NCBI GenBank assembly: GCA_028023455.1
Contig: JAQFVV010000004.1
Location: 18,166,001 to 18,230,000, forward strand
Direction: 5' to 3'
From: Epiperipatus broadwayi
Taxonomy: Eukaryota; Animalia; Onychophora
DNA: 64,000 nucleotides
The position numbers were made by a program, and so were the translations under genes. How positions within the stretch are numbered: position 1 is the first letter of the stretch; every line of letters begins with the position of its first letter. The notes under the pieces are model-generated. The model ran no database searches and had not been told where the DNA came from. It worked only from the letters and a program-made list of their open reading frames with translations. This document shows, in pieces, positions 12,233 through 38,653 of the stretch.

Positions 12233-12562
12233 AAAATAGAATAATTCTAAAACAGGTGGACATAAAATATAATATTTATCTTTTAAGTTTCTAATAACTC
12301 TTATTTACATCAATTGCTTTTATAAAAGTTAAATTCATGATTTAATTTCAACATATAGATTTAATATCAAGGAAAAAGAATATATAGTAAGCAAAGCCCC
12401 CCCCCCCCCCAATTATACAACTCTTATAACTGGCTTTTTGATTTCTTTATTGATTTATTTTTTATTTGAAAGTATAATTTTTATGTTCAGTATTGTTATG
12501 TGCGCTTATATATTATTTCAGAAATTCAAAGTTATAAATATATGTTGATAAACAAAAATAAA

Positions 12563-12730
12563 ATGACAGAAGCCACCCGAGAAAGGTTGTTACCGTGGCT
12601 TCTCCAAATGACGGACAAAGGTATTGTTCCAGGCCTTCGATGGCTAAATGAAGAAAAAAATTTACTTCGGATGCCTTGGAAACATCAAGGAAAACATGAC
12701 TGGAAACCGGACGATTCCAGACTTTTGATG
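12563..12730 (+). CDS. IRF: IRF-family transcription factor, first coding exon (N-half of the tryptophan-pentad DNA-binding domain)
   Basis: MTEATRERLLPWLLQMTDKGIVPGLRWLNEEKNLLRMPWKHQGKHDWKPDDSRLLM matches the IRF DBD pattern (WL..I.G..PGL.W...EK...R.PWKH). Phase-0 donor GTAAGT at 12731. An in-frame alternative ATG lies at 12542. Confidence 0.95.
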
Positions 12731-15700
12731 GTAAGTAAATATTTTCTTGGATTTAATATGTTTTAAAATCTTTTTTTCCTTCTCTTGTTACAAATTACAT
12801 TATGAGTACTTAATATATATATTCTAAATTATATTTAAGAGAATAAAACTTTTAAAATAAAAAATTAAAACAATATCTTGGCATTACTGATTCCTCAAAT
12901 CATTATTATTTTAGCAATAACTTCTAAAATTTTATTCATATTAAACATAAAATGAATATTTTTTGACCGGTTAAAAATTTTTTTCACGAAACGTAACTTT
13001 AAATTGCAATAGAAATCCGGAAGCGTTTTCTCGAGTAAATTAGATGAAATTATTTCTGTTACAATATGAGTATATTGGATATTTTTTTATAATTAACAGC
13101 TTAAACAAAGATGCAGAAACATTGACTTCTAAAATAAACTTAAATTCCTCCATTTCCAACGCCTGCTTGATATGTACTGCTGGTACATCAGCTATATCTA
13201 AGTGATTTTTTGTACGTGTGTGTGAGAATTATTTATGAATATAATAATGTGCGGAGGAGGGGGCTTAATTGAAAAATTACGATTTTTGAGTACGAGTGAT
13301 CTCATTTACAATGAAATTAAAGGATCACAAAAATTTGTTAATAATCTATTGCAGGTATCTGCGGATAGTTTATATTGACTAATAATTACCGGTATCTACA
13401 TTTCTTCCGTACTATCGTGTTACTTTTTACCTATAGATGCATACCCCCCCCCCCATCTAACCTACACATAAAACGTAAAATGTAAATGCGCAAATATGTC
13501 ACATGTGTATAATAATGGGGAGGGAAAGCAATTTAATTAAAAAGGACCGGAGACGGGGAGCACCAATTAATCTCCCCCCCTAATTAGAGAAGTAGGTGTC
13601 TTCTAAATTATTTTTGTAATAATTTTTAATTGTTCGAGTTCTTTGATTGTTTTTTTTTTAAAAACGGTTGCGCTACTTTTTATTAAATTAATAAAATATA
13701 TATGTCCGAATAGGAGTTGCTTTTACCTGTCCCCATCCACAATGATATATATATTATTTAATATTCGGAAAAAATATTAGCAACTTGGTTTTTTTTTAAT
13801 TTTATTTGGAAGTTTACCTAACTTAAGAATGCAATCTATACAAAATTACACAAAAGCATTAACTCATTCAGTGAAAAAATAAAAAACCCATAAAACTCGT
13901 CAGTTTAATTAAATAAGGGAAATATTTAGTATGTCATACAAACTGCTAAATTCTTATAGGATTATAAAAATAAAAAGAAAGGGAAAGATAAAGCCCAAAG
14001 GGATTGTGTCATCACTTTCCTTATACGGTCAATTATTCTAAAAGATATTTTTTAGTTACGCCTCTAATGTCAGTCATATTCTTTTACAGTAAATATTAAT
14101 TTGTAGGTCATGCAAAACGATCCTACACCTCATTTCCGCCTACTCTTAACTCCCGCTTCTACGCTTAAGTTGGCGCAGATCAGAGTATTCACTTTTTTGT
14201 GAGGGAGTTGGATATTCTAAACAAATGTTTCGTAACTTAATTTATCAAGATATACTGTATTTGATAGTGCCGTAAAATTATCAATTATAATTTCAGAGTA
14301 GGCGTATAGACAGATACACATACGTGAGTGTAAACACATATCGTTAAAATAAAAGTAATTCATCACAAATTACGTTTAGAATGCTTAATCAAAAAAAGAA
14401 ATATATTTTTTGTCGTTCTAGAATTTTTGTATTGATGAGAAAGAACGTCAATAATGTACAAAAACTGAATATGGATGAATATTAGAGCGTGTGCTACGTA
14501 TCTGATGGCAGAACATGAAATCACCTAACTATAGCTTGATGAATTAAATTAATTATAATGTGAGAACTTTTTTTTTTTTTCGTAGTTAAATCATCATAAG
14601 TCATTTGACAATTAATTATGAAAACTGATGGGTCGTGAATAAATTGTTAACAAAATTAAAAATAAAATAATTATTAATTACTGTAATAAATGGTATTTAG
14701 TAAAAGAGAAAAATTAAATATAGTAATTATAAATTGCTTCTACTTGTATTACATAATTTATATTTGTCAAATAGTAGTGGCATCGGGTGTAGAAGTTAAT
14801 CCATCAATTGGTGGTGTTCATTAACTAAAGTTCGAATTCAAATGAATTTTGGAATTTTTTGACTTTCTTCTATTGAACTCCATACAGTATTTATACACGA
14901 CATTAATCGAATGCATATTCTTTAGTCATGCTTATGCCTAAGAATCGAACCCAGATTGTATTTAGAATTTTTTTAAGAAGAGGGGGATTTCCAAGCAAGA
15001 AGATACAATTCTTTTTTAAGTAACAGAGGATTTTTAAACAAGCTTTATCATGGGCAATTTAGTTAGTCATCAATTTATTTGGTCAGTAAACGGGTGTTTA
15101 GTTATATTTGGCTGGAAGATATAAAGTTCTAGCTTAAGCTGAAATTTATCAGATGATTGTTGATGCACTGATCATAAAACAAAAATATTACAATCACATA
15201 ATGTTTATCATTGCTGAAGTATTATTTACAGAATCATGATTTGTCTTTCTTTTCATGTTATAAACTATTGCTATAGTAAAGAGTTTACGCAAATGGCAAG
15301 CTGCAACTTTGGTGCTTCAATGTCACGTGATCTCTAAAACAATAAACTTTTGTTAATTTTTTTTTTTTTTTAATTTACATATATATGAATCCTTATTTTT
15401 TTAAATCAAATTATCTTACTGAAATCAAAAAGAAATAGCCTAGACTTTATTGTACATGAAAGTCTTCATTTTCATACTATTTATGTATTAGTAACATGGA
15501 TGACTTATTGTGAATTATTATTATGATTTATTAATTATGTCTTATGAATGGATAGCACTTGGCAGCAATAAATAATGATTGCATTAAAATGGACAAGTAA
15601 AATAGTCTTTACATAGTCTATTGCAGAGCAAAAGCCATCACTGGGTTTGTCAATGGCTAAGAAGTAAGGATATAGTAGAAGAAGAATAATTTGTCATGAA

Positions 15701-15809
15701 TTGGTTCAATTACAGGTCAGGGGGATTTTGAAGAATTCTACTTAGCATAGAATTTTTCATTAAGGTAATTGAGCTGGAACTATTCCAGCTAATCATTCAA
15801 TTTTGGTCA

Positions 15810-15915
15810 AGAGTTCATAAAAAGTCTGAACACTAAAAAAGATAGCACGGAGCTGTGATGTATAAACCTTGAACTCCAGAATCCACCATTCTATTACTGC
15901 ACTTAACCACACAAG
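15810..15915 (-). mobile_element. Old tRNA-related SINE fragment (family D)
   Basis: Similar to 43141-43420 (gagttcataaaaa...ccttgaactccagaatccaccattctattactgcac). Confidence 0.45.
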
Positions 15916-16639
15916 GCAGTTAATAGGTATCAAGATATTCTTAAGTAGAAAATGAAATAATACTGGAATAATAGATTTGATTATACTTTTGAAATGTTTT
16001 ACATTAATAGCCTATTTATCTATTCATTAAGTTATGTATCTATATATCATTCTGTTTATCTAATTACAATGTATTATATAATGGGCAATTAATTAAAAAT
16101 CATTATAAGAATTTTCCTATTCCTTACAAACATACCTTTTATTTTTAGAAAATTTAGAACATGTAGCTTTAAAAATATGTGCAAAATATGTAGTATGCAT
16201 ATTGTTTAAATTTAAAATAAAATAAATGAATGATGATCAAAAAAATTAAATTATTAAATTATTAACAATTTAAATTATTTGATAATGAATATATATAAAA
16301 GAAGATAGAAAGATGTACACAAAAGTAGCCTTGCAGTTTATATTTAAGACATACATTGTGAATAGACACTGTACGAAAAAAAAAGAGAAAAACTTTATCT
16401 CTAATTTAACAAACCAATGTATTTAAAAAGCATATTCTTTTTTTATTATTTCCATAAATATTATTAAAAGATTATAAAGCACAAAAAAGAAGATTAACTT
16501 TATTAACTAAATGTTACTAAAAAGATAGAATAAACTTTACAAGAAAAAAATAATTATAATCAATCAATTGTTTTATTTATAGTTTAGATAAACAGTACAG
16601 ATATAAAAATACATTTTAGTATAGTATACAGAATATATT

Positions 16640-17860
16640 AATCATCGTCATTAATTATTAATGATGGACTGTAGAATGAAGATCTATCCATATTTAATTC
16701 AGTCTCTCTAATCCATAGCTTGTCTTTTCTTCATCATTTCAACAAAACAACTTATTTCAATCAACCATCTCATATAAGATCTCTTTCTAGGTCTTTTGCA
16801 ATCTCATGATATCTTGCTTAGGACTTCAACCATCCAACTATATCTTCGAACAATTTGTCCACCTTCTTTCAACAATAGCAGTGATCTCTTATCTGTATTT
16901 TATTTTCATCACATTTCATACTACTTTAAGTACTATGAAGTTTCTATATTGTTCTTCTGTTAATTAAACAAATATTAGATCCATAAATAACAAAAATAAA
17001 ACATATCTATTAAAACTTTCTCTTTCCAGAAATCGATTTATTTCTTTTAATATTATTTTTTTACTACCAAAAACACTTCATCCAAGTTTAATTCTGTGAT
17101 TAATTTCATCCATTACATTTTCCATTTGCATTAATAATGTGATCAAAGTGTTTGTAATTGTTTGCTTCTTCTAATTTATGATAATCAATTTTTATTTTCT
17201 TCTGAGAAAAGCCATTGAACATTATTCTAAACTCTTAGTATTTGTCTTTAGTTCTACACTTTCACTTGCATATGATAATTCTTGCAACATTTACTGAAAC
17301 TATGAAGCATTATTTGCAACTACATTTACCTTTATTTACTTCTCATTTTAATTTACAAAATAGGTGAAAAAAAGTTTTGAAAATATAGCAGCAATGGATT
17401 GTACATTCTTATCACTGTTAATCTTCTCAGTATCACCAATAATCTAATCACTGATGTCACATTTTGATAAATATTCTTCAGAATATGATATCTTGGTTCT
17501 ATATCTTGATGGATCAAAGCTTTAATCAGTGTGAATATACTTATAAAACCAAATGACTTTTTATACTCTACTACAAATCCAAAACTTAATACAATTTATA
17601 TCCCCCTCCCAATATCTTCTTTCAGTAATTGGATGTGCCAAAACCACTTTACATCCAGCTTGTTTTTTTTTCTGGTTGGTATCAAAAATGTAGAACCTTG
17701 CAATTTCTAATATCTTTATTATTATAATTCTTTCTTAAACATTAATAATATTGATGCATTCTTCCAATTATCTGGTACATCTTTATCATTTAGACATTTA
17801 GAATATTTATTTCTTCATCCATTTCTTTAAAGACATGAATAATAATACCATTCTTTCCTA
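16640..17860 (-). mobile_element. Degenerate RTE LINE fragment (RT to 3' end)
   Basis: Colinear with 21050-22400 (ccaagtttaattctgtgattaatttcatcc; aaaaccactttacatccagcttg; gcattcttccaattatctggtacatc). Confidence 0.85.
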
Positions 17861-18073
17861 GAGCTTTTTTTTTTATAAGCAAGTATTGGAATTATAAATC
17901 TGACAGTATTATTGTATATGTGTTTGAATATTAAAAATAAAAAAACCTTTTTTAAATACTCTCATAATTAGATATATTAGAAAGAAACATTTCTCATACT
18001 TCATTACATTATATCCATTTGTTACATATAATTACCCAATATGAGGCAGGTTCATCATCATTGGCAATTACCC

Positions 18074-18208
18074 AATCATTATATTTGATGATCCAACTAA
18101 TTAGTGAAATATTAGTCATATTCTCTGAAAACAAGATAAATCATTATATTTGATGATCCAACTAATTAGTGAAATATTAGTCATATTCTCTGAAAACAAG
18201 ATAAATCA
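18074..18208. repeat. Perfect 65-bp tandem duplication
   Basis: The unit aatcattatatttgatgatcc...aaaacaagata starts at 18074 and again at 18139. Confidence 0.9.
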
Positions 18209-20274
18209 AAACATTTTCATATAATTAGCAAGTCTAATCATTTTATATATGCAAAGTCCAAATTGATTTTTATGATAGTGGCATAACATGGAAAGCAATA
18301 GTTAAATAAAATAGTTAGAAACAAAAAGAAATGTTAACAAACAAACAAAAAAAGAATAGATTTTAAGAAAACAAACTCATATGGAATACAGCATAAAAAC
18401 AGAAAACAATTATGTTTAAATTAATATAGAATAGCAACCAAATAGGATTCATGAGAGCTAATTTTTAAAGAATGCACTTCATATTAAAAAAAGGAGTAAA
18501 TTTAAATTTTAATAACATAATTTTAAAATAAAAATACTAGAACCACTCCCACATTGATAAAAAAAATCATTTAGGGATGGGGGGGTCAAAATATAAGATG
18601 AATATATAATTCAAATGTTGCAGTCATTGCTACATCATGTAAGAATAGAATAAATATTTTGAAAACTAGAGAAAATTCTGTGCTAAAAAGTTTCAGAAAG
18701 AAGTGGAAAACAAAAGACTTTGAATCTGACATCAAGATTTTGAAAAAGTCTAAAATTGATCTAATAGATAATGCAAAACACCCTAAAACTAATAAGAAAA
18801 CTATAAATTAGCCTAGACAAAAATATAATAAAATACTAAATATTTTGCAGAAAAACATGCAAATACAATTTCAGTACTACAGGCTAATAATAGTGTTGTA
18901 ACAAATCAGATTAGTAAGAATCTGGATTTAATTAAAGAACCTGATGTAGAATCCATTGGAAGAAATAAAAATCTACAATATTGCAATGGAAAAATCCAAA
19001 TTCATCTATACATAAACACATCTTCAATAAATAAAATGATAAATAAAATTAAAGTTGAGAGTGTGTTGAATCTCTAGAATGAACAATTCAAATTCATTTT
19101 AGATGAGACAAGTAATGGATAATTGAACCAAGTGCAGTATTTAAATATTTCCATGACACCTTATAAATTTTTACATTGGATAGTGATGTGCAAAAAGAAA
19201 ATATCAATATAGAATTTAATAATCACTGTAAAATAAATGTAATACATATAAAAATACAAATTTTGATGCAAATGCTACAAATCAATCTAATACTGATGCA
19301 GAAAACAATGATAAAAATAACATGAATGTAGAAAGTGTAGATGAAGAAAAAGATGATTGTAGACCTGTAAAACAGGTCATTAATATGTCAAAAATAAATG
19401 TAAACATTCAAAAAGTCATGTAAATTAATTCAGTTAAAAGTTGAAGATTTAGGCTAGTATCAAAGATGAAAAAAGAGACTAAAACAAATTTAGAAATTAT
19501 GGAAGCAACCAAAATAGATTCAATAATAAAAATAAATATGAAGTGAATAAAACAATTGTGATGTCATAGCAAGTAATTTAGAAACTGCAGAAAAATTGAT
19601 GCTAAAAAGAGTAGTTCTCAGTAAGTCCAGATAAACATAATCAAATATAAGAAATCTTATAAAAGGTCATATAAATCTATGGTGCTTATGATTTCGTTAC
19701 ACTAAAGGGGAAGATTCAAATTAAGCATTTTATATATATATATACCATAGAATAAAATAAAAAGGATTATAAGGAATTGTGGAATATCCACATTGGTTGT
19801 ATAATAGGAAAAAAAATGTATTTGAGATCTGAAAGGGTGTTTTCAATGCATCAGTGTTTATTATAAAATCCATCATAAAAAATATTATTTAGGTTCATAT
19901 AATATCTAAAGTATATGTGTTGTAATTAAAAACTTTTTTTTTTTGAAATGGGAAGAGTAGGATAATTTGTCGTGTCTGTGGATATGTATTTTTTTTTTTT
20001 TTAAAATAATTAAAAGAATTCTTATAAAAAAGATCACAGAATAAAACATATATTTTACCTAAATGTAGATTTGAGATGTAATAAATAATTTACCTCCTTC
20101 CCCAAGCAAATTATTCTTTTGGATATTTCTTGAATATATTTTTCAATAAACTTGTATCACTTTAATTAATTAAATAGGAAAGATTTGTAAACAGTTTTGT
20201 AAAGATAAAACAAGTAAATCAATCAATATGAAGAATTTGAACAATGTAAATATATTTCCCTGAGTTGTATTTAT

Positions 20275-20790
20275 ATATTGGACTATTCTATCATATAATA
20301 TGAGTATTGAATATCTTTAGAAAATTTAATTTTATTTAAATACTCCTAATATATTCAATTGTTAGTAATAGCACACATGTTAGTATATGTACAACATTTT
20401 GAGAGATTTTATTCTCCCCTCTTCTTTGGATGTTGCTGGCCTGACTAATGATAGCATTTGCATGGGAATTGAACCTAAATCTCAAAGATAAGTATATGAA
20501 ATATCTATTTATTGTTGCCTTTGGAAATATGGCTCAGTTGCATAGAGTGTTACCTTAAAATTCAATACTCGAGAATCTAAGGGTCCAGGTTCGATTCCTA
20601 TGCTAGTCAGGCCAGCGACATCTGAAGAAAAGGCGAGAATAATACCTCTCAAAATGTTGTGCATATACTAACCTGTATGCTATTACTAACAGCTGAATGC
20701 ATTTGGAATATTTAAATAAAATTAATTTTTGCTAAAGACATTCAATAATCATATTAGATGATGGAAATAGTTCCAATATATATAAAGAAA
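20275..20790. mobile_element. Family C tRNA-headed SINE, head-to-head pair
   Basis: Right copy (+) has A box TGGCTCAGTTG (20530-20540) and B box GGTTCGATTCC (20588-20598). The left copy (~20275-20470) is its truncated reverse complement. Confidence 0.75.
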
Positions 20791-21049
20791 ACAAATGTGT
20801 TTTCAAGAAAATTTTATTAAAGTTCAGGATAAATTCAATCTAATCAGTTGCAATTAAAAATTAAGAGAAAATACAGAATAACTTCAGAGTTATTATTAGA
20901 GGATAGCTAAATAAACTATTTTACACTTTGAATGGATTGCTATATCAAATCCATCCTCAGCTAAATGATTGAAAAGAGACTAGTTGTTTCTCTGAAAAAA
21001 TAGCTATGTATTATTTATCATTATTATCATTATGCCTTTTATGAGAATT

Positions 21050-23990
21050 TCATCATCATCATCATCAACCATTATCAATCCACTGCAGGATGAAGGTCTC
21101 TCCAAGTTTAATCCATCTTCTCCGATCTTTAGCTTCTCTTTTCCACAACACCCCTGCACATTTTCTTATTTCATCCATCCATCTCACATGTGGTCTCTTT
21201 CTGGGTCTTTTACAATCTCTTGGAATCCAGTTTAAAATTTCAATTGTCCATCTATTATCATTTCTTCTAGCAATATGTCCAGCCCAACTCCATTTCAATC
21301 TTTTAATTTTTTCAATAAGGTCAGTAACACCTGTTTGTTGTCTTACCCATACATTGTGTTTTCAATCTCTTCTTGTTACTCCCAACATACATCTCTCCAT
21401 ACTCCTTTGAGTGGGCTGAAGTTTCTGTATTGCTCTTCTATTAAGTGTCCAAGTCTCAGATCCATAAGTAAGAACTGGTAAAACACATTTGTTAAAAACC
21501 ATTCTTTTCAAACACATAGGCATATTTCCTTTTAGTATCAAGTTATTTCTACCAAAAGCACTCCAACCAAGTTTAATTCTATGATTAATTTCCTCCATTA
21601 TGTTTCCATCTGTATTAATAATCTGACCAAGGTATTTGTAACTGTTAACTTCTTCTAATTCTTCATAATTAATCTTTATTTTCATACTTTGAGCAAATCG
21701 ATTAAACATTACTTTAGTCTTTTTAACATTTATCTTTAGTCTTACTTTTCTACTTTCATCTGCTAACTCCTGCAACATTTCCTGCATCTCTGAAGCATTA
21801 TTTGCAAAAACAACTACATCACCTGCAAAATCTAAATGACTTAAATACTCTCCATTTACTTTCATTCCTTTAGTTTCCCATTTTAATCCAAAAAATACTT
21901 CTTGCAGCACTGCTGTAAAAAGTTTTGGAGATATGGAGTCACCTTGTCTTACACCTTTTTCAATGTTGATTTTTCCAGTATCATTATGTAATCTATTATT
22001 GCTGTTGCATTTTTATAAATATTCTTTAAAATATAACAATATCCTGGATCTATACCTTGATGATCCAATGCTTTAATCACTGAAGAAATGTGTATAGAAT
22101 CGAATGCCTTTTCATAATCTACAAATCCAAAACATAATGACAAATCATATTCATTTGTCCTTTCTATGACTTCTTTTAATACCTGGATATGATCTATTGT
22201 ACTAAAACCACTTTTAAATCCAGCTTGTTCTCTTGGTTGGTGGAAATCCAAAGTTCTCTGTAGACGAGTTGTAATTATCTTGGTAAAAATTTTATATAAA
22301 ATTGATAAAAGGCTGATAGGTCTGTAATTTCTAATATCTTCTTTATCACCTTTTTTAAATATTAATATTATTACTGCATTCTTCCAATCTTCCGGTACAT
22401 CTTTATCATTTAGACATTTGGTATATAACTTTGCTAAAATTGTTTCTATTTCTGCACCTCCTTCTTTTAATATGTCAATTATAATTCCATCATTTCCTGG
22501 AGCCTTTCCTTTCTTCATACATTTAATTGCATGTCTCACTTCTTCATTTAAAATTCTGGGCAATTCGGAAGATGTAATAGATATAGGAGGTACTTGTTCT
22601 TTATTACTATATAATTCTTGATAAAAATCTTCTACCAATTTCATGATGTCATCTCTCTTTTTAGTAATAATTCCATCTTTTTTTCTTATTGCAGATATAA
22701 ATTTCCTACCAATACCAAAATGTTGTTTATCTTGAGACTTTTATTTTCTTCTACAGCTTTCCTTGCTATTTCACAGTTATACTTTCTTATATCATTTTCA
22801 ACTCTTTTCTGTACCATTTTACAAAATTTGAGATATTCAATTCTTTTTAATACATCATTTTTGTATATCTTCATATTTCTTCTTTTCTTCATAAATTCTC
22901 TAGTCTCAGTAGAAATTTTATTAGTCAATTGCTCCTTTTTTCTACCAGCTATCTTTGTTGCAGTTTTTAAAAGTGTATCAGTTATTTTCATATTAATTTC
23001 ATTCAAATCTGAATCATGTTCAAAATCTCCTAACACTTGAAACCTATTTGTAAGTTCTAATTTAAATTCATTAGAATGTTTCTGTTTTTCTTAATAATTT
23101 TTGTCTCTCTAGTTTTACATTAACACATAACTTACACCTTACTAATCGATGATCACTTTCTGTGTTAAATTTATTAAGAACATTACAATATTGAAATATG
23201 TATTTTCTGCTAGTCAAAATATAATCCAATTCTGCTGTACCTTCATTTGGATGCTTCCATGTCCATTTTCTTTTAACATTTTTTTCAAAAAATGAATTCA
23301 TAATATAAAGTTTTTCTTTTTCTGCAAACTCCACAAGTCTATGTCCTCTCTCATTTATATTACCATAACCAAAATTACCTACAGCAATTTCATCTTTCAT
23401 TTGTCTACCAATTCTAGCATTAAAGTCTCCCATAACAATTTTAAACTGTTGTTTACTCTGATCAAAAGCCTTTTGTACATCCATATAAAAATCTTCTACT
23501 ACTTCATCACTATGAGAACTTGTTGGGGCATAAACCTGAATTATCTGCATTTGGTATCTGCTATTAAGTTGTATAACTAATCTTGCAACTCTGTCCGATA
23601 CACCATCAATCTCCACAATATTGTTCTTCCACTTTTTATTTATAATGAATCCTACTCCACTTGTATTTCCAATATGTGTGCCTTTATAATAGAGTATATT
23701 TCCACTTTTTAAATCAATTGTTTCTTCACCTTTTCTTCTAACTTCACAAAGTCCAATAATGTCCCATTTAATATAAGACAATTCTTCTTCTAATTCTTGC
23801 AATCTTCCTTCACTTGAAAATGATCTGCAGTTGTAAGTACCTAAATAAAAAGTCATCATCGAATGGCAGCCTGGGTCCACAATCAGGGGATTCTTAGCAC
23901 CCTCCACCTTCAGCCACCAACCGCTGCCTTGGTTTGTGACTTTACAGCCTCCTGGGAATAAGGGCCATGCTTTATTTTTGTCTGTCATAA
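21050..23990 (-). mobile_element. Near full-length RTE-clade LINE (APE endonuclease plus reverse transcriptase), frameshifted
   Basis: Consecutive minus-strand ORFs 23071-23988 (APE: GTYNCRS, WDIIGLCEVRR, QVYAPT, MGDFNA, ESDHRLV), 22686-23036, 21949-22644 (KAPGNDG, YRPISLLS, QAGFKSG, FVDYEKAFDS), 21362-21910 (LDFAGDVV, YKYLG) and 21065-21298 (KWSWAGHIARR..WIPR..KRPRKRP..RW). (TGA)n tail at 21050-21066. Confidence 0.95.
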
Positions 23991-26518
23991 TTGTATATAT
24001 GTATTGGAAAAATATTTATCATTTACACAAACATTCATTCTGCCTTATCAGGCACTGAAAAGAAAGACCATGGTGTTTCTTGATCTTAAACTCAGAGGTA
24101 AAAAGCCAATAAACTCACCATGCTGGCTAATGCATGTTGGTGAGCAGCCCATTTATGTTCGGATACTATATGAATAATCACATAGTAATAACAGCTGCAA
24201 CGACAAGAATGTATGGAGTGGACATTAGGAATTTGCCCTGCTCAGTTCCTTTAAGGTCTCCAAGAGGAATCAAAGGATCTCCTTTCAGTTAATAGCAAAC
24301 TCCTTTCTGCAGCCATGAAAATTTACCTGCCTATATTAGGAATGATATCTTCAAATTTTATTATTAATTCATCAAAGCTATTACTCGTGCTGGAATGACA
24401 CATAATAAAAAAAAAAATTAAACACTAATAAATTTATAGTATTAATTAAACTTCGTTAATAAAATACTTGAATTTAATTGATAATGCGTAAATTTCTTTA
24501 ATTACATTTACAATTTTAAATCCATTTACCTTTTTTAGTTGATTTTCACCTAAACTTGTTATTTGTATTGCAATCATATTCATTTGATTTCAGTGAAAGG
24601 AATCCATGGAGATTATTTAATGATAAAAATTTTAATTAAACCAAAATACATAATAGATTAAGATTTTAATTCTAAGCAAAATATCTAGATATCAGCAGCT
24701 ATTAATGATACAAGAGAGAAATTAAATTAGAGTACTTCAACTCTAGTGAGAAGAAAGTTCAATTCTGTGTTTGCCTAATAGTTTTTTGTTGATAGAATAA
24801 TGGAAAAAGAAATTTATACATAATTTTTCTACTTGTTTCATTGTATTTTATTTTAAAATGTAACTTCACAAATTTAGTAAGATATTTGTTTCTTAGTAAG
24901 CATTTGATGTTTACATTTAGCTTTAATTTGAATTTATTTGATTGTTAGCAAAAATTATTCAGTTAAAAATTTACTGATGTCAAAAATGAAATGCCTACTA
25001 AAATAGTCCTTTGTTTTTACTATTTACTTTGGTTAATAACTATTTTTTTATTTCAAAGTTGATATTTTCTTTTTTCAGATAATTTTTGTTTCTTGAATTT
25101 TTATTAAACATATATAAATATTTAATAAAGAATAAATTATTTATTAAAAATATGAGTGAAGAAGAAACAAAAAAAGGAGCAAATAAGATTCACAAGATTG
25201 AAAATATTTTTTGAATTAAAAAATATGCCTGAATGGGTAAAATGATGGGGGGGAGGGATATGCGTAAATAAAGCTCAGAAATATTTTGTAAATAGACAAT
25301 TAAAAAATAAAAATTCAGTTTAAATATTTAAAACAATCTCCTGTAATTGTTACAATTTAAATGTTTTTCTTGTTGCATTTTTTATATGTCAAGTACATTT
25401 GTGAGATTGATACATATGTATACAGATTATATCAATAATTTTTTTAAAAAATATTTTATTAATTATTATCTTTAAAATATTTTTATCATTTAATTAATAT
25501 ATATAAACAGTGTTTGTAGATAAAGCACTTCATGAGTGTGTTGTTTCCAAAAGAATTATTTTCAAAAAAATGAAATAAACAATTTTGATTTTTTTTTATG
25601 CTTGAACAAAAGATGAGATAAAAAAATTAATATTAAAAATTTCTTAACTTTATATTACCAATCAGATTTATTTTGTTAATGTATCTATGTTAAATAATTA
25701 TATCTAAAGGATTGTTATTTATTAAATCATATAATTTATTTTAAGGGTCTAAGTGTTTATGTTTCTTCTAAATTATTTTCAATGAGACAAATGCATGTGA
25801 AAGGAATAAACTATATTAAGTGATTGTTTGCATATAGCTTAATCAAAGAGCAGTAAATATTTTTATGCCATCAATTGATGCATGATGTATAATTAAGAAG
25901 GTCATAGATATATAATGCAAAATAAGCACATACTATACAAATATTTGTTATTTAATCATGATTATTTGTCTAGATAAGTACACTCTCTCCTATCTGATTT
26001 TATTCAGATTATTGCAATCAATATTCTTTTTGGTATTTTGGATGATCATCCATCATCATCACAAATGGCACCATCATCTCCAGATAAAGACAGATATATG
26101 TCTTTTATCCCCTCATCAGCAGATATATTCAGATACATATAAATTAACACACCAAGCTGTGGCTATTTATATATTTATTCATCATCTGATCATGATTAAT
26201 AGCTGACTCAGATGTCTTAATCTCCCAACATAACTATTCATTACATGTTTTTAGCTAAATACATGGCAATAATCTTATGAAATAGCCTAATATAAACTTA
26301 CTATTTGCATTTTTATAACCCACTTTCCTCTGAGTTTATGATTGCTTTTGCTTTAAAGATCATGAAAATGTTTTTTTCCCCTCTCTCTTTTGCTGAATGT
26401 GTCTCTAATATTTTTTTCTCCAGATGGTTGTAATTTATTCAGTTCACATTCTTTATTTACATTATTAGAACTTTTAAAAATCTCCATAGATTCTTGCAGC
26501 AACTTGTAATTACATTGA

Positions 26519-26569
26519 CATAATCACCATATGTATGGCAATGGTAATATGTATAGAGAGTTTTGCCTG
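26519..26569 (+). mobile_element. 51-bp insertion resembling the family A 3' end
   Basis: Ends in gtatagagagttttgcctg (compare gtatggagagttttgctttg). Flanked by a 15-bp direct repeat TTGTAATTACATTGA (26504-26518 and 26570-26584). Confidence 0.55.
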
Positions 26570-26949
26570 TTGTAATTACATTGATCAATGTTTAGCAGAA
26601 TATATATTTCATTAAAATTTATATTATGTTTTGTTAATTTAAGATATGAATAAATAATTGATGCATTCAATCACTTTTTAATTGTAATAGTAGGATATCC
26701 TTATATGATAATGATTCAATGGTACTTTATCTTTGAAGTATGAAAATATACCAACCAATTTTTTTTGAATATGTAATGCAAATCGTTTAGATATTATAAT
26801 ACATATAGCAGACACTAGCAAGTGAATTTGGCTATTTCAGTACCAAGAAAAAAAAACTGCTCTAGACATGAGTTTTGTGATGACTATAAAAACCCAATCT
26901 ATATCTTATTTTCTGTTTATTTGATATTTTGTTACATATGTCTAATTGT

Positions 26950-27474
26950 TATTAAACAAGGCAAAACTCTCCATACAGTAGTGCCACCCTGTACCAATCA
27001 GAGTAATCAATGGATACCAGAAGGCTTGTGCTTAAAATCCCTATCTAATGCCTACTCATCCAATATCCCCAGACTAGTTTCTGGCTTGTGGCCTTCGTCA
27101 GTGAGGAGCTTTGGATCTAAGAGCACTGCACCTAGATCTTAGGATCTAATGCAACCCTCCAGAAGCCACCTTTTAACTCTACTTAACTACAAAACTATGA
27201 GAATGAAATTGAAAACAATATTTTCAATCTAAGCCCAATAGCTTATATAGTCATGTGGGTCTGAACTCAGTTCAGCACCCATACATTTTGGTGTCTTAGG
27301 CTTTTTAACAACTATAGCCACCACTATCCTATTAGGCAGGATTGGTGTTAAACCACTAAACATCACATGATCACTATCTCTTATACTGGCACTACTGTAT
27401 CGAGAGTTTTGCTTGTTTAATAACAATTATGTGCTAGTATAAGAGATAGTGATCATGTGATGTTTAGTGGTTTA
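26950..27474 (-). mobile_element. Family A element, copy 2 (longest, with 5' fold-back)
   Basis: TSD ATGTCTAATTGT (26938-26949 and 27475-27486). Internal inverted repeat ~27348-27393 versus ~27430-27475. Confidence 0.8.
27058..27116 (-). ncRNA. Type I hammerhead ribozyme (family A), stem II base-pair mismatch
   Basis: Minus strand TCCTCA CTGACGA AGGC-CACAA-GCCA GAA ACTAGT C TGGGGA, with A.A instead of U-A at 10.1/11.1. Confidence 0.7.
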
Positions 27475-27981
27475 ATGTCTAATTGTAGTTCTTTAATGTA
27501 TTCTATTCTCTGCTACATCTTTCCAGTGAAAACAATCAACAATTTACTTCTTTAAAATGTCTTTTGAGATAAACCTTATAATGTAGAGACAGTTTGAGCT
27601 CTATTACAAAAACCCATAAAATATTCTTTTAGGAAATCTTGGATCTTTCTTCTTTTACATGTCCAATTCAAAGGCAGGCATGATTTTACAATGGTGAACT
27701 CTAATAGTATCCCATCCAGTAAATTGAACAACATATTAGTTTTGTAATTTTGCCATAGTATTTTTAAAATTTTGCTGGAAAGTCTTTAAATAAAATTTAT
27801 CTAATGCTTTTGTATTGTATCATAATAGAGGATCCAAGTCTCACTTTCATATGCAGATTGTTAAAAATATTATATATTTTAACAGAGACTCTTACTCTTG
27901 AGAGTTTTTTCCCTTGAGTAAAGTAGCTTTATTTAAAAAATCTTATTTAAAAAAATAAATACTTTTACCAAGAAGTATATA

Positions 27982-28372
27982 AGCATTTATTTTATAACGT
28001 CTTGCGTGCGATTATAATTACGATAGAATGACAGCCTGTTAAGCTAATTGCGCAGACGCTGTGAGAATGTTATTAATAAATGAATACCTTCGAACAACCA
28101 CATGATATAGTATTTGTGTAAGAGTAAAAAGGAATCCTCGGTGTCATTCATACAGACATTATATATTGTAATTTAAAGTGACTATTATGTAGTCACGCCT
28201 TCGTTACAACTTCTTTAGATTTGCTCATATATAAACATTTGAGTCGTAAGGGTAAGAGGATTCCTTTTTACTCTTACACAAATACTATATCATGTGGTTG
28301 TTCGAAGGTATTCATTTATTAATAACATTCTCACAGCGTCTGCGCAATTAGCTTAACAGGCTGTCATTCTAT
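27982..28372. mobile_element. Young fold-back insertion with perfect 118-bp inverted arms and TSD
   Basis: 28022-28139 is the exact reverse complement of 28256-28373. Direct repeat CAAGAAGTATATA at 27969-27981 and 28373-28385. Confidence 0.85.
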
Positions 28373-28429
28373 CAAGAAGTATATAGTTATGGCCAAAGTC
28401 AGAGCATCTTGCATTGGTTGGATAGTCTG

Positions 28430-29310
28430 TGTGATAATGAATAATTTTCCTTTCCTCAGTTAATACAGTTATAAAGTTTCTTTGTCACTTTCATTTAGAA
28501 TTATTGACTGCAATCCAAACAATGTGAGACAAACAGTTGACATTCTCAATATATTCCAATCATACATATGATTTTCCAATCATTAAATCTGCTAATGTTA
28601 TTTCAAGTTTTTCATGAAATAAAGGTTGCAATAGGAGAAATATGTGAACCCATAACTTAAACATTAAATATAAAAAATGTATTTGATAAATGGTTTTCAT
28701 TTGGAAACAAAACATTCGATTTTAATTACCAAAAAGCCAAGTATGACCTAGAATTATTGATGACTTTCCATCTTTCAATCTCAATAATAGGATCACCATG
28801 ATATCAAGTTTATACAATAGAACAAACAATCTCATGAGGTTAAAATAGTTTCATATCAAAGCATTATCCAAAATAATAATTCATACAGTTTATAGAATCA
28901 AATATTGGTTTAATAAATTTATTTTTCATGATTTTCTCATACATTTTATTTAAGTATTATTAATCCTGTATGGATCATACTTTTAAAATGAGAGAGAAAT
29001 TGATATTCTCCATTGACAGTTGTCAGAGAGTAATGGAGTTTTGATCTTGAGAAATGGTTTGCTATGTCTTTGAATATTACCACCAACAATTTTACATGTC
29101 TTGCTCATGTGCTTGCTTACTCTTCTGTTTACATGAGTAGTTATCGGTTAATACCAAATAGTGTAGTAGTATAATATCCCCATCTCCAGATTAGTTTCCA
29201 TCTTTTTACTTCATCAATTGATTGTTTTTCTTTAGATACTATTCAAAAGTTATTTTATTTCCAAATAGTTTAAAATACATGAAATTCTTGATTCAGATAA
29301 TAGTCCCTAA
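28430..29310 (-). mobile_element. Decayed Penelope-like RT remnant
   Basis: Broken minus-strand frames give MGSHISPIA (~MGSPLSP), LEYIENVNCL (~RYVDDIF) and EKIMKNKFIKPIF (~PKIHK..PLRPI). Confidence 0.5.
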
Positions 29311-30270
29311 AAATTAAAAATTCTATTATTTTATCTTCTTATTTATCTAGGTATAAAATTAAGAAACAATCTATTCAGCTACGTAAGAACTCGGTACACA
29401 AAACACCGAGTTAAATTTGCTATCAGATTTGTTTCAAATTTTAAGATATTTTTTCTTATTAAATGCATTGTAATTACTACCTGAAAATGTGTTCCATTAT
29501 TTAATTTTTAATGTATAGTCAAACTTACCAATATATAATATTACATGTGCATTAGATTAACGGCCAATGTATATAAAAGAAAGTAGTATTGACCTTGTCT
29601 CAGTAGTATTAATATTTTGATTTAAATATTAAATCACTTTTGACATCGAACGTTTTTGACATCGAACGATAGAATCATATGATAATGAAGTGTTGACGAA
29701 TCCCCTCAAGATAAGATCAGAATATCCTATATAAACTTTAAAAGAATCCGCTGGTTGTTTTCTTAAATTTTTTTCTACCAGTTCGGAGTAATTTATTAAT
29801 ACGAAAGCTGTTACTCGTTGAAATATGATCGAAAGAAAATAAATGGGTAATTGCTGGTTGCTTTCGGCATTTAACTTTTAAAATGATTAGAATAATTAGA
29901 TTGTTTTACTGTTTTAACTTGATTAAATCTTGACTTTTTATTAATTATCAACAATATTTTAAAAAAAATCGTAAAAAAAAAAATCGCAAAATTAATAATT
30001 AACCACTTTGTTGTTGTTGTTTAAGCTAAGAACAGCAATAGTTGTATATTATATAACTTAGTATTGCCTTTGTCTAAATTATGAAGAAATTTGTTGTAAG
30101 GTTCTATTATAACCGGCTTAATAAATTATCTAAAGAAAATACTGTATATAGAGGGAAGAAAAAAAACAATCGTTAAAGTATTAGAAGTAAGCAAATGAAG
30201 TTATTGTATGTGAACAGTATGAGTAATTTTTGTTTTATGATCAGTACATCAACAAGTATAAACACTCACC

Positions 30271-30477
30271 ACATGATCACTATCTTATCCTAAGATCTAG
30301 GTGCAGTGCTCTCAGATCCAAAGCTCCTCACTGACGATGGCCACAAGCCAGAAACTAGTCTGGGGATATTGGATGAGTAGGCATTAGATAGGGATATTAT
30401 GCACAAACCTTCTGGCACTCATTGATTACTCTGGTTGGGACAGGGTGGCAATACTGTATGGAGAGTTTTGCTTTGTT
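30271..30477 (+). mobile_element. Family A element, copy 3 (internally deleted)
   Basis: TSD TATAAACACTCACC (30257-30270 and 30478-30491). Reverse-complement homology to copies 1 and 2. Confidence 0.8.
30316..30374 (+). ncRNA. Type I hammerhead ribozyme (family A), intact core, sense to IRF
   Basis: ATCCAA AGC TCCTCA CTGACGA TGGC-CACAA-GCCA GAA ACTAGT C / TGGGGA TA TTGGAT. Predicted cleavage after 30360. Confidence 0.85.
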
Positions 30478-31619
30478 TATAAACACTCACCTGGTTATTC
30501 CAGATGGGATTTTTATTTCCTAGTTAAAAATAAATAAATACCCATTTATTGATCATTAATTGAATATCTAACTAGGTTGATTATAGACTGAGTATTCTAA
30601 ACCTATTAAAAATCCCAGCTTTTTATAAATATTTTAAATTTTACTCAGATTGTAAATCCAGTTTGTCTACAAATTAATCGTGTTATCATGATTTTCTTCC
30701 ACTGAACCCCCTTCTATTAGTTATTGATGATGATGTTAAAATCATTTTACAGAATTGGTGATAAATAAGTTCGATGTTGTCAAAGTTATCAGGTTAAAAT
30801 TGATTTGTGAAAGAGTAAAAAGAGTAGAATTTTTATGAGTACTCAGGCTGCCTGGCATAATAGACTTGCAATAACTATATCTTGTCAGTCTATGATCATA
30901 AAACTGAGCATGTTTTAAGGGGAAACTTAGTTATGGTTATTCAATAAGTTCAACCAAGTAAAAGTAAAATGGATTTTAATATACCCTCTCACAGCAAATG
31001 TATTATTATTTCTTTACTGAAGAAATAGTTTAAAAAATGGGGCATTAATCACCAAATCAGACAAATTTTAAGTGATCTGTAGTTTTATTTTGTAGCTATA
31101 AATAGATGGACATCCATTTACCAATTATAATATATTTACTGGGTTAGCAGTGGGTTGACTATTCAAAAAAAAGTTCCTAAGCTTTACTTGAAATCTAAAT
31201 ATTTCAAGTTTTATTTGATTAGTGATCAATGGATGTGCTGAATCATTATACAATGATGCTTTTTATTAAATTCTGTAATTATTGCTAGTTTAAACTAAAA
31301 AGGTATGCTGATTTAGATTTTTTTTAAAAAAAAAATCACTTTACTAGTGTGTTAAAACAATACTTAAAATTATTACTATGTTTTGTTTCCATCTGAATTA
31401 ATTCATGGCAAAGAATTTACCTTGACTATCTATTTCATCTTTTTTATTATTAAGCTTAATATTATTCTTTTAAAGCTGACTGTTCCTATAATAATTGACC
31501 TGCCATTTTGGCCATAAGAGTTGGACAAAATATATGCAATAAAAAGTTACCATTGTTTGTAGTTTTCTTTGTTGTTATATAAAGGACTGTCCTGAACAAC
31601 TTAAGCTAGAAAAGTAAGT

Positions 31620-31975
31620 TTTAAACCAATATAAAATCCTCTACTTCTTCATAACAATGAGAACATGTTGGGACATAAATCAGAATTATCTGCATTTTGT
31701 ATCATATATTAACTTGAATTATTAATTTTGCTACTCTGTCTGATAAACCATCAATTTTCATAATATTGTTTTTCCAATTTTGACTTATAGTGAATTACAC
31801 TTCATTTGTGCTTCCAATATTTGTGTCTCTGTAGTAAATCTGTCTACCTTTCAAGTCAATTGTCTTTTCATTCTTTTAATTTTACAAAGTTCCATTTAAT
31901 ATTAGACAATTCTTTCAACTCATGTAATCTTTCTTCATTTGAAAGTGGTCTGCTTGTAATTATTATAGAAAGTCA
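31620..31975 (-). mobile_element. Degenerate RTE fragment (APE region)
   Basis: Matches 23480-23830 (acaatgagaacatgttggg; gaattatctgcatttt; gtccatttaatattagacaattct). Confidence 0.7.
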
Positions 31976-34084
31976 TTATTATAGGGTAACTTGAATCCTC
32001 ATATCATACTGTAATAGTAGCACATCTATTTGTTATGTTTATTGTTTAGCTTTAAGCCAGATAAAACTTTACATTTTTTTTTTTTTATGTTTCATCATAT
32101 TTAGAATTTTTGTTTTTACAGGTAATCAGTCTGTATCAATTTAACTAACCATCCAGTAGTGATAGAAAAATAATCTCTCATTAATTTAAAAATTGCAAAT
32201 TAGTTTAAATTGAATGATGTTTTAAAAATAGCATCGATAAAATACTATTGGATAAATCTTTGTGATAAACAGCTATTTAAAGTCTGTTTGATCTTTATAT
32301 ATGTACACACACACATTAGTGCTAACAACTGATTTTCATATGTAAATCACAAACCACAGCTCTCATGCTTATAAACCAATAGGATATATGCAAACTGCAA
32401 GATATGACTATGGAACCGCTTAAATAGATTGCAAATTAAGCATAACTAAACAGATTGAAATTAAATTTGTCTAGAAGTTTTTTATAAACTTCAGTGCAAT
32501 ATGCCATTAACTATCTAATTGTACTGTAACAAACAACAGATTTTTAATGTTCTATTGGTTTATTTAAACATGAGGACTGTGGTGTATGATTCATATACAT
32601 TATATTTAATGCTTTCACATTTATATAATGTAAACAAAGTATTTTGGGGGTTAATCTGTGAGCATTATTTGTATTACTGTTCAACGTTTCAACATTCCAC
32701 CATTGTCAAGGGCAAGTTTTTAAAGAAAAACCGTTCGATCTCGAGTAGTACGAGATTGATTGAGCGTGAGGTAAAAATTGAGATTGAAAGAGTAGTTGGG
32801 TATTCAGAACACTGAATTAACAAAATATTTATTTTCTTCGGTTATACACAATGATCATCTCTCTTAATTAATTTTAAATCACAAAGATATCATTGAATTC
32901 TAGAGATTATGTTAAGAAGCATAGTTAAAATACTCAAAACTAAATAATAAAAATAAATTACCGTAAATTGAACTTAAAAAGTAAGAGTAAATATATTTAA
33001 CCCACTGGTGTGATAGATAATATTTATACTTGCTTGCACAAATAAAGAGAAATGAGTAAATCAGACTCATTTAAATAAAGTTGATTGGATTAATGGGATG
33101 ACTAATCTAGGATATTCGTAATGATGCATAATAATGAATTTAATTTAAAGATGAAGATAATAAAATGTATTTAAAGATAAATTTTTGTAAAGTTAAGCAT
33201 ATGCAAAATATAAATAAATATGTGCATAATTATAAGAGGAAAAGGTCATATGCAACCCTCATTTTAATTTATAAATTAAATATATATGATTTCAACATGT
33301 AAAATGTAAGAGGATGCAGTCAGATTAGGAAAATATAGTATGGATATTCTCTAATTATAATGCTATATTAGGGATGAAATGAAGTTTCACAGAAATTTTT
33401 TTTTTTAATAACTATTTTTTTTTTTTACAAAATAAGTAAAGTGGAGCTTAAGAAAAGCAATTAATTGGTCTTAATAGATATAGAGCAACTCAAGAATGAT
33501 CTTAAAGATTTTAGATTAATTTAATTAAACCTTGCATCTAAAAACAATTGTAAATTAGTGATATAGAAAAATAACTTAGCAAATCAAATATGTGGACTTT
33601 TGAAGTATAAGAAACATGTTTGATTATGTGTTAGAGAAATTATGTAATTTAGTTGGAAAAAAATTAGAAAAAAATACGAGTTAAAGAATAGGCAACTGAG
33701 TGTAATTAAGAAAGACCATTATGCAGCATAAAAATAGATCTAATCTAAATTAGTATATAATCAAATCAAATAAAAATAGGTTGAAAAGTACACCAATTCA
33801 ATACTAAAACAGTAATTTTGTAGTAATTAGCTAGTAAGAAAAACAACAGCTATAAATTACTTTTCAGTACTATTTGTACTATAGTCATGATAAAAAGTTC
33901 TTCAAGTTTGATGTTTCATAATAATATGCTGAGCACCTAACCAAAGGAGACCATTCATCATTTATCTCATGTAGTCCCTTAAAAGTGAACGATATCATGT
34001 CTTGTAGTGAGAAGATGATGCTTTTGCAACAGCTAAGTCCATGTCTGGACCATGTTCCCATTTTGAATGATATAATTCTAACTT

Positions 34085-34550
34085 ATTCTTCAGATGTTGT
34101 TGGCCTGGATAGTGAAAGTCTAGCTTAGAGAAATTGAACTGGTGTCTTTTGGATTACTATACTAAATTTAAGATGGCACTATAACATCCCTGACTACTTT
34201 GCCAAAAAGCAACAGTTGGGAGAAATTTTTATAAACTTATTTATAAGAGGTATTGATAGATAAATATATAAAAAAATTTATTGATTTTGCCACTAGTTGA
34301 TTAAAGTGTCACTTTAAATTCAGTATAATCTGAAATTTGCTGAGTCAATTCCAATGCTAGATTGTCTTTAGCCAGGCCAGCAACATCTAAAAAAGAGAGA
34401 GTAGAACTACTCAAAAAAAAAGTATTTTGTACTAACTAGCAGTATTTTGTACTAACTAGCATATTAGTATTAACAACTAAATGTATTTAGACAATTAAAA
34501 ACACAACAATTTAATTAGACAATGGAAATAGTCCAAAATGTAACTACACA
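34085..34550. mobile_element. Family C SINE, decayed head-to-head pair
   Basis: Plus copy ccaggccagcaacatctaaaaaagag...gacaatggaaatagtccaaaat; short inverted copy tcttcagatgttgttggcctgg at ~34088-34109. Confidence 0.55.
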
Positions 34551-35940
34551 AAAATGTAATCAATAAATAACTTTCAAAGAAATGTATATATGAGGAGGGG
34601 AGGGTGAATATTAATAAAACAATAGAGTTCAATATAATCAAGCAATAATATTTGATCCTTGATCATTAATAGTTCGATATGCTTATTTTAATAATAACAT
34701 TTATTCAGTTAATATTTAGAACTACATTATAATTTCTAACAAACTTTTTATATCATTAAGATATGTATAATACATAAACACACACACACACACACCCACA
34801 CCCACAATAGCAAACATTCCTTTTAAATAAATAGCCCATTGCAGAAAAAAGTCCTCTTTAACAAAACTCATAAAGAAACAACAAAAGAGAAGATTTGCCA
34901 ATTCCTAGATGATGAGGGTTTGAGTAATTTTTGATTTTTGTTTTACCCTTTATAGAGCTAATGATAAGTAGAAATCCATTTATGGACTAATATTGGATGG
35001 TTAGCTGGACTGACTATGGATGAACTACCGATAAAAAAAAAACTAAACCTTTTGAAAAGAATTTCATTCAATCCTATTTAAATCCTAGGTCTAAAGCATG
35101 ACGGGCATATGTTATATCTTTTCACCATGAGGCTCTTCATATATATATATGTGTGTGTAAAATAAATAAAATATCCGTTAATTAAAAACAATATTGTAAT
35201 TATAATTGAAATAATATTTTTAACGGTTTACAAACAATTACAAACAATCCTTACGTCCGCAGAAGTACTTTCGGTTACTTTCTAACCTGCCTCAACTGCC
35301 ATTAAATTCAAAATCATTAATGTATTTTTTCACATAATTAATAAGTACATACACAAATCTTATTTTAGTCAGGTAAGAGATTTTAATTGTGGCCATTTTA
35401 TATAAATCTCACCAATTAAATTTACAAGCAACATACTCACTATATAAATGATTAAGTGAACCTTATAGTATTTGAATTAAAGCTTGACCTGTTTAATAGA
35501 GAATAGTTCAGTGCATTGAATTTTGCATATTATAAATTTCAGCTCTTTAATATAATGTATATAATTGATTATATATATATTCAAATTATGTTATTAAATA
35601 TGCATAGTTGTTATGTCATGGTATATAATAGTTGTCATTACCTTCTAACAATTTATTCTGGCATCCCAATATTTTCATGGTAAATACTTTTTTATTTTTT
35701 GATTAAATATTTTTGGGGGATAATAATTGCTTCCAATCCACTCATAAATCTAAATTTTATTCTGTAATTGTTCAGATATGAATTAAAATTATGAATTTTA
35801 AAAATACTAAATATTATTTTAGCACCAATAGTAATAATAAAATACATTTCAGTTTCTATAGGAGTGTTGTATTACCTTTTATTATATATATATACATATC
35901 TCTTTGTAATTAATATATAGTACTTGTTTTATTATTGCAG

Positions 35941-36118
35941 GAATATGCTAAAGTGACTGGAAAATATGTAGAAGGAGTAGATAAACCGCATTACGCGATG
36001 TGGAAAACTCGTCTAAGATGCGCGCTCAATAAGCATCCGTACATACGACTTAATAGAGAAATGTCAAGATTAGACTGTGAAGAACCTTACAAAATTTACA
36101 GGATATTACCAAGAAAAG
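35941..36118 (+). CDS. IRF: IRF-family transcription factor, second coding exon (C-half of the DNA-binding domain, recognition helix)
   Basis: Acceptor ttattgcag ends at 35940. Exon reads EYAKVTGKYVEGVDKPHYAMWKTRLRCALNKHPYIRLNREMSRLDCEEPYKIYRILPRK, then a phase-1 donor AG/GTGAAA at 36119. It joins in frame to exon 12563-12730. Confidence 0.95.
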
Positions 36119-37386
36119 GTGAAATTCATTATTTATTTTTATACTACATTAAAAAGATTTTGAAGGAAATTAATTTTGTATTACGCACATTTTGGACTAA
36201 AAAGTTTTTCAATAGATTATTACAATTTTCATTCAATTTTAAAATTGTGTTTATTTATATGCGTAATTTTTCTGAATTAGTAATGAAACATGCTAATATT
36301 TAGATAGTTATTGATCAGAATTATTAACTAACTCCTGCTTCACAAAAATAATTGAAAAATAAATAATATTAATCGATATTAAAATGAAAACAATATAATT
36401 AATAAAACCCACCGCACTTTTGCATATAATAATCTAATATTATTTTCTTAATATTTTATACAGTTTTGTAAATATATTATTCACATTTTACAAACATTTG
36501 TATATGCTAAATGCTGAGTCTAGAATTGTAGTTTTGTATTAAAAATTATTTTTACCATAATTTAATAGTGATGAATGTATGCCAAACTCATTAGTATTTA
36601 TATATGGCGACCATCTTCTAATTGATAGTAAAATTTTATATTCTTATATAAAAAGATACATTTTTACATACACGTACAATTGATGAAGTTCTCTTTAATA
36701 ATTTTACTTTAAATAAAAAGTATATAAAATATCTTTTTTCATTAGTTTTTTGATATCGAATATGCCACCTTTACCTAAAGAATAAATTTAATATAACACT
36801 GAATTAATTCAGGTATATAGTTGTACACTTAGTATTAGATCTGTACTATACAAGACAGAGTGGATAAGAGAAATAAAGATGACTGCTGAATAGATAGATG
36901 CAAATCCAATCGCTATTTAATGATCTAAAATTAGTCTGGGGACTTAGATGTGACATTTATCTAATGTTCTCTGCGTATTCGCTTATAATAAATCACTTTA
37001 GAATAGATAATTAAATTACTACTTCCAATCTTCTTAGAATTCAATTGGTGCCAAGAAATAGAAATAATAAAATGAAGCACTATTATGCTATATTTTTTAC
37101 TAAAGTTTAAAAAGCACAATCAATAGTTCTTGTGAAAATTTATTTTAGCATTTATTATATACTAAAAACAATAATTGCATGGCTTATAACTCAGGAATTC
37201 AGATGAAATAAGGGACTTAGGAGTGACTGAGACTGAATTATGATTCATGGACCTTAAATTTTAAAATCTGCCATTGTACCGCTATAAATCTTGAAAAACC
37301 TATTAAACTTAAAAAAAATAGCAGCATTTGCCATAGTGAAATCACTAGCACAAACATCATACCACTAGCTAAGAAGAAAGGATACT

Positions 37387-38629: not shown

Positions 38630-38653
38630 TTTTCTTTCTTTCTTTCTTCTTTC

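Follow-up and report, generated by a model that had tools for sequence, protein, structure and literature searches.

The 5' Part of a Very Likely Functional IRF-Family Gene with Tyrosine at a Hallmark Tryptophan Position in an AT-Rich Invertebrate Genome

Does a 64-kb stretch of the genome of Epiperipatus broadwayi (contig JAQFVV010000004.1, positions 18,166,001 to 18,230,000; 27% GC, zero N) hold a working gene that belongs to the interferon regulatory factors (IRFs), and of what kind would it be? A preliminary description, made from the letters alone, had joined two exons of this stretch, here called the window, into an IRF DNA-binding domain of the IRF4 supergroup, with tyrosine standing where one of its five hallmark tryptophans (Trp1 to Trp5) would be. 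We consider it very likely that the exons form the 5' part of an IRF-family transcription factor gene, functional and expressed, in an AT-rich invertebrate. The gene is a fast-evolving new addition to an already known family and an otherwise ordinary invertebrate IRF, its sole unusual trait being the tyrosine at one hallmark tryptophan.

Two exons of an IRF DNA-binding domain

The peptides of the two exons were searched separately against the Pfam IRF profile (PF00605; length 105, curated cutoff 27 bits). The exon 1 peptide matches profile positions 1 to 47 (47.8 bits, E 2e-12) and the exon 2 peptide positions 51 to 105 (53 bits, E 4.7e-14), and on the sequences of relatives the two abut with zero residues missing. 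Because both halves match on their own and abut exactly, the match is far beyond chance. Trp1, Trp2, Trp3, Trp5, and the histidine of PWKH are kept, and the Trp4 position reads E-Y-A, as had been read earlier from the sequence; all four motifs quoted in the preliminary description (PWKH, KHDW, WKTRLRCALNK, and PYKIYRI) were located on the forward strand where it had placed them (Table 1). The base-contacting residues of helix 3 (WKTRLRCALNK) are present together with the PWKH histidine, with residue roles taken from PMC7819612.

Exon 1 opens with an ATG and closes in phase 0, with GTAAGT directly after it, and exon 2 is preceded by a pyrimidine run and CAG (TTTTATTATTGCAG, before 35941) and followed by the donor GTGAAA after 36118; splice sites are canonical at both exons. 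A second in-frame ATG at 12542, upstream of the start chosen in the preliminary description, could extend the N terminus by seven residues (MLINKNK), and a stop at 12467 to 12469 lies upstream of both ATGs. Intron 1 would fall between Met and Glu-(Trp/Tyr)-Ala. The half-domains are split at this same point in the metagenome contig L003, there by a 427-nt GC-AG intron (break 4573/5001), and five gene calls on genomic contigs (P0003, P0006, P0038, P0075, and P0088) likewise pass from intron into ...Q/EWA.

Evidence of transcription comes from the reads of four runs (X1 to X4), which were compared over 33200 to 39100, a range that covers exon 2. One contig of X1 (record 3, 543 nt) and one of X2 (record 11, 426 nt) align at 35940 to 36119 only, with 208 and 155 unaligned bases on either side in the former and 156 and 90 in the latter. 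In X3 and X4, contigs of 1.5 to 1.7 kb run continuously through exon 2 and introns and represent DNA. The unique intron sequence at 36155 to 36745 has zero depth in X1 and X2, which fits RNA. Because the alignments of the X1 and X2 contigs end exactly at both borders, exon 2 is transcribed and its acceptor and donor are spliced as predicted, in material that carries the labels of two related organisms and comes from two studies. One further base matches at either end of these contigs, in keeping with a final G in exon 1 and a GGN Gly codon following Lys, and the relative P0308 reads PRKG at the end of exon 2. The upstream flank in X1, at 208 nt, is long enough for the whole 168-nt exon 1, and tblastn and local profile searches of open frames brought up no second N-terminal half-domain in the window.

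Exon 2 is also under purifying selection. Between the four runs and the window there are seven base differences in six codons, five of which change synonymously at the third position (35976, 36039, 36048, 36051, and 36087); the sixth combines 36061 and 36063 into a conservative replacement, Met41 to Leu. Nonsynonymous sites make up 141 of 177 in this exon (80%), giving P of ~0.002 to 0.005 for so few replacements, and exon 2 is free of indels, whereas several occur in the intron next to it in X3 and X4. Seven base differences from four runs make a small sample; even so, the synonymous excess and the splicing together argue against a relic. A spliced transcript and purifying selection, by which we recognize a functional gene, were thus both found in the exon 2 data. 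As a side observation, X2 and X4 carry the same organism label and different exon 2 variants (36039, 36061, 36063, and 36087 in X2; 36048 and 36051 in X4), a pattern that points to separate alleles, a paralogue, or imprecise labels.

These data bear on a reading that takes both exons for an IRF remnant or pseudogene in decay, with the tyrosine as one product of that decay. Such a reading could draw on the clustering of departures from the family pattern, LLMEYA as against IFMEWA, and on the long branches described below, but the frames are open, the splice sites canonical, and exon 2 part of a spliced transcript in two runs; all but one of the six variant codons keep the amino acid, indels are confined to the flanking intron, and the tyrosine is constant in all four runs. 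We therefore regard decay as very improbable. The PF00605 matches and the transcription data uphold the claim that this animal genome, AT-rich at 27% GC, holds a genuine gene of the IRF family.

Placement of the domain and the tyrosine at the Trp4 position

Searches with the gene's own protein comprised exon 2 against representative sequences and word searches, one with the two-exon-row alignment and one with a 129-residue open frame limited to exon 2. Among 1.84 billion representatives, exon 2 found 416 proteins at an E value of 0.001 or less, with a top identity of 63%, and the metagenome search gave three relatives at 54 to 58% identity. The nearest relatives by both halves summed are the transcriptome proteins P0299, P0298, and P0033, an Arenicola IRF-like protein, Branchiostoma and tunicate proteins, and an intronless pair from ENA, with identities of 49 to 62% per half. 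All of the closest full-length relatives that were listed with their domains contain PF00605 and PF10401, the IRF association domain (IAD). Two groups of relatives deserve mention in their own right. The intronless pair, P0049 (L001, 10001 to 11743) and P0309, are full-length IRFs of 580 and 605 residues with PF00605 and PF10401, are carried by ENA contigs 192 and 396 kb long, and have Phe at Trp5; either retrogene origin or a host poor in introns could explain them. Proteins P0001 (1797 aa), P0002 (582 aa), P0116, and P0029 contain two to five separate IRF DNA-binding stretches, one of them being a shark 'IRF8-like isoform' with three, and may be annotation fusions of tandem genes or true multi-domain IRFs.

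Comparison with solved structures points to IRF4 as the best solved relative of both halves. Exon 1 scores 47.7 bits against IRF4, 44.3 against IRF2, and 40.7 against IRF1 in PDB, and exon 2 scores 56, 33.1, and 28.4 bits, respectively, which supports a domain nearer to IRF4 than to IRF1/2 as judged by sequence. The preliminary description had called the helix WKTRLRCALNK an IRF4/8/9 form. IRF4 indeed has exactly this helix, but the form is not special: it is the commonest one among the collected relatives (258 sequences), occurs unaltered in Ciona, Styela, Branchiostoma, Schistosoma, and a hemichordate, and is an old and widely shared state. The description of KHDW as IRF1/2-like does not hold, since Trp stands at that position in 54 of 198 collected relatives (e.g., GKQDW, GKHDW, and SKHTW), including annelid, mollusc, brachiopod, and flatworm proteins, and those with domains listed carry PF10401. 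Neither the 'IRF4/8/9' helix nor the 'IRF1/2' sixth tryptophan, both widespread in invertebrate IRFs, diagnoses a vertebrate subfamily.

That the gene is of IRF1/2 type, or mixes both types as KHDW might hint, is accordingly a remote prospect. Exon 1 scores nearly level for IRF2 and IRF4, and IRF1 has its sixth Trp after KH-x (PMC11593489); exon 2, however, separates the types widely, the recognition helix has the IRF4 form and not WKANFRCAMNS, and the 54 relatives with the extra Trp belong to an IRF4-like set. As KHDW is no mark of IRF1/2, there is no mosaic to explain. The split between IRF1 and IRF4 subfamilies has been dated as early as cnidarians and bilaterians (PMC7819612).

In a tree with the two exon halves as separate rows, a split that has 98% support by the Shimodaira-Hasegawa-like approximate likelihood ratio test (SH-aLRT) puts both together with protostomes and amphioxus, with vertebrates, tunicates, and a hemichordate opposite. 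Both halves nest among IRFs bearing an IAD of the IRF4 type (IAD1, PF10401), and their end branches are 0.67 and 0.89 compared to a median of 0.21. The gene is thus a fast-evolving IRF, its long branch lying among those of protostome type and of amphioxus, and the domain seems to group with IRFs whose known members carry IAD1. The claim of an IRF4-supergroup gene stands in part: IRF4 gives the best PDB score and both halves lie among IAD1-type IRFs, but an exon for the association domain itself did not appear in the window.

What sets the gene apart is the second codon of exon 2, TAT, two base changes from TGG, with no other letter in any of the four runs. Across 275 domain instances in the collected relatives, the site reads W-A in 272 and W-G in one, the other two being truncated gene calls; tyrosine occurs in none of the 273 that are readable, in a sample leaning to IRF4-like proteins. 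The Trp4-to-Tyr change announced in the preliminary description is therefore real and rare, and the tyrosine is fixed in two related organisms. The adjoining Phe is also replaced, giving LLMEYA here and IFMEWA in the nearest kin. In IRF1, Trp11, Trp38, and Trp58 contact the sugar-phosphate backbone and fix the helix-turn-helix on the GAAA core, which is read by Arg82, Cys83, Asn86, and Ser87 (PMC7819612).

By analogy, helix 3 (WKTRLRCALNK) would enter the major groove, where its Arg, Cys, Asn, and Lys would read the GAAA core, while Trp1, Trp3, and the residue at the Trp4 position would clamp the sugar-phosphate backbone, the third clamp here being Tyr. Tyrosine is aromatic and could preserve the packing, and its hydroxyl could reach a phosphate; DNA binding is expected to be kept for these reasons, and we predict that GAAA-type sites are probably still bound, perhaps with changed affinity. 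Another possibility, to which we give little weight, is that the replacements of Phe by Leu and Trp4 by Tyr at the start of helix 2, on a fast branch, mark a lineage-specific IRF with altered DNA docking, in spacing, affinity, or flank preference around GAAA. This possibility would gain weight should the host group be one thought to lack IRFs. A fixed Trp-to-Tyr change under selection at one of the three backbone-holding tryptophans is a natural test of how far that contact tolerates change.

The rest of the gene and of the window

Several points weigh against a functional, expressed IRF gene at this locus. The tryptophan pentad has four of five members, with Tyr at Trp4, and falls short of the five-Trp definition. 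The PROSITE IRF pattern W-x-[DNH]-x(5)-[LIVF]-x-[IV]-P-W-x-H-x(9,10)-[DE]-x(2)-[LIVF]-F-[KRQ]-x-[WR]-A (PMC2885996), checked by eye, shows four mismatches: M for [IV], L for F, M for [KRQ], and Y for [WR]. Close relatives also mismatch at [KRQ], and the strict pattern is therefore narrower than the IRF family. The best identity in the collections searched was 63%, and an identical or near-identical protein was absent from them. The RNA label of X1 and X2 is a software guess, and the join of exon 1 (12730) to exon 2 (35941) is one that we infer, the reads having covered exon 2. Placement relative to IRF1/2 comes from the PDB bit scores and the domain content of relatives, the tree having no IRF1/2 rows. 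Finally, tblastn with 54 and then 26 full-length relatives brought up no association-domain exon (PF10401) in the window, and two local profile hidden Markov models, run against all open frames of at least 12 residues on both strands, recovered only the two known exons. The downstream IAD exon that the preliminary description had suggested looking for was thus not encountered in the window by either approach. All tblastn matches were at chance level, such as one at 61168 to 61324 (E 0.6 to 1.2), which hits a stop, and the GC-rich downstream patches are copies of a tRNA-like repeat or noncoding.

One way to account for the missing exon is a short IRF with little beyond the DNA-binding domain, which would act as a repressor or decoy by competing for IRF sites and would not activate by way of an association domain. 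The lack of an association-domain exon in the 27.9 kb downstream and elsewhere in the window, and the fast evolution of the domain, would suit this, yet the RNA-like contigs extend at least 155 and 90 bases past exon 2, in phase, all close full-length relatives have PF10401, and single diverged association-domain exons would score weakly anyway. Intron 1, at 23 kb, also means that later exons may fall outside the window. We consider a short IRF unlikely. For a full-length gene, the transcript continues beyond exon 2 and past 36119 to 39100, as the RNA-like contigs show, and because intron 1 is already 23 kb, the remaining exons are probably further on or past the window end. A linker and an association domain are probably encoded beyond 39.1 kb, most likely past the end of the window.

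Table 1. Coordinates of gene parts, motifs, and a transposable element in the window
Feature	Positions	Strand	Description
Coding exon 1	12563-12730	+	56 codons; 44% GC; N-terminal half of the IRF DNA-binding domain, with Trp1, Trp2, PWKH with Trp3, KHDW
PWKH	12674-12685	+	
KHDW	12692-12703	+	
Intron 1	12731-35940	+	23,210 nt; 27% GC; repeat-rich
Decayed RTE/BovB-like LINE in intron 1	21365-24015	-	Endonuclease and reverse transcriptase over three open frames; Pfam PF03372/PF14529, PF00078
Coding exon 2	35941-36118	+	59 codons plus 1 base, phase 1 end; 37% GC; C-terminal half of the DNA-binding domain
TAT codon	35944-35946	+	Tyr at the Trp4 position (= Trp58 of IRF1); four runs and alignment of relatives
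Recognition helix WKTRLRCALNK	36001-36033	+	Trp5 and base-contacting Arg, Cys, Asn, Lys; identical to IRF4 in PDB alignment
PYKIYRI	36085-36105	+	
Start of intron 2	36119-39100	+	RNA-like contigs depart at 36118/36119; no joint back into 36120-39100 reported

Other features of the window are mostly repeats. The nearest proteins to the decayed long interspersed nuclear element (LINE) in intron 1 come from scorpions (56 to 63% identity), with others in coelacanth and moths, a spread of relatives that looks typical of horizontally moving RTE elements, and a second fragment of this kind lies at 5953 to 6840 on the reverse strand. A repeat of ~100 nt at 37397 to 37499 has very high depth in all four runs, reaching ~29,000 in the RNA-like runs, and its loose ends resemble a tRNA-derived head; similar tRNA-like pieces (containing AGTRTRNPGNCL) also occur near 3.2, 48.8, 53.8, and 59.1 kb. 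The repeat at 37397 to 37499 is probably an abundant, transcribed short interspersed nuclear element (SINE). A tRNA scan of the window came back empty, and Rfam at gathering thresholds gave no family in it. A patch at 41100 to 41500 has 45 to 52% GC compared to a 27% background and open frames unlike the surrounding sequence.

Comparison with known IRFs

Insects and nematodes are reported to lack IRFs, which are present in many other invertebrates. The schistosome factor SmIRF, cloned in 2007 and nearest to IRF4, was described as shared with deuterostomes by conservation but absent in insects and nematodes (PMC2194728). In shrimp, an IRF is reported to activate Vago (PMC4602278), and a cGAS/STING-TBK1-IRF axis has been described in oysters (PMC8218723). 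The preliminary description framed the gene as too much of a novelty, as IRFs of schistosome, shrimp, and oyster have already been cloned and studied (PMC2194728, PMC4602278, PMC8218723). The gene adds one more expressed IRF to a well-documented invertebrate repertoire and leaves the picture of antiviral signalling before interferons unchanged.

Among natural IRFs with a single pentad replacement, the closest parallels are fish IRF7, which is without Trp2 (PMC11593489), and two groups of relatives with Phe at Trp5 (P0049, P0309, P0038, P0075, and P0088). In these a different tryptophan has changed, and the DNA-contacting Trp4 is intact in all collected sequences. Vertebrate IRF4, along with IRF8, IRF9, and IRF10 (2dll, 7jm4, and 8hcl), shares WKTRLRCALNK, PWKH, Trp1, Trp2, Trp3, and Trp5 with the protein described here at ~50 to 55% identity, but IRF4 has AWA at Trp4 and Tyr (GKQDY) where KHDW has Trp, and vertebrate, tunicate, and hemichordate proteins lie across the 98% split. 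SmIRF (Smp_071470 cluster, P0014) is, like this protein, nearest to IRF4 and has WKTRLRCALNK and SKHTW; its identity is 45% and 53% by half, it has DWA at Trp4, and it belongs to a separate flatworm clade.

The nearest known system is that of the protostome-type IAD1 IRFs, namely P0299, P0298, P0033, and P0308, the proteins of Arenicola, Capitella, Owenia, and Lingula, the mollusc 'IRF8-like/IRF5-like' proteins, and P0047 of Branchiostoma. These have the highest identity (50 to 62% per half) and have in common with this protein the protein start, GK(Q/H)DW, and F/L-M-E-aromatic-A, as well as the same intron position and the same PRK/G exon end. They differ in keeping Trp4 and the Phe two residues before Met, where this protein has Tyr and Leu on a branch three- to fourfold longer.

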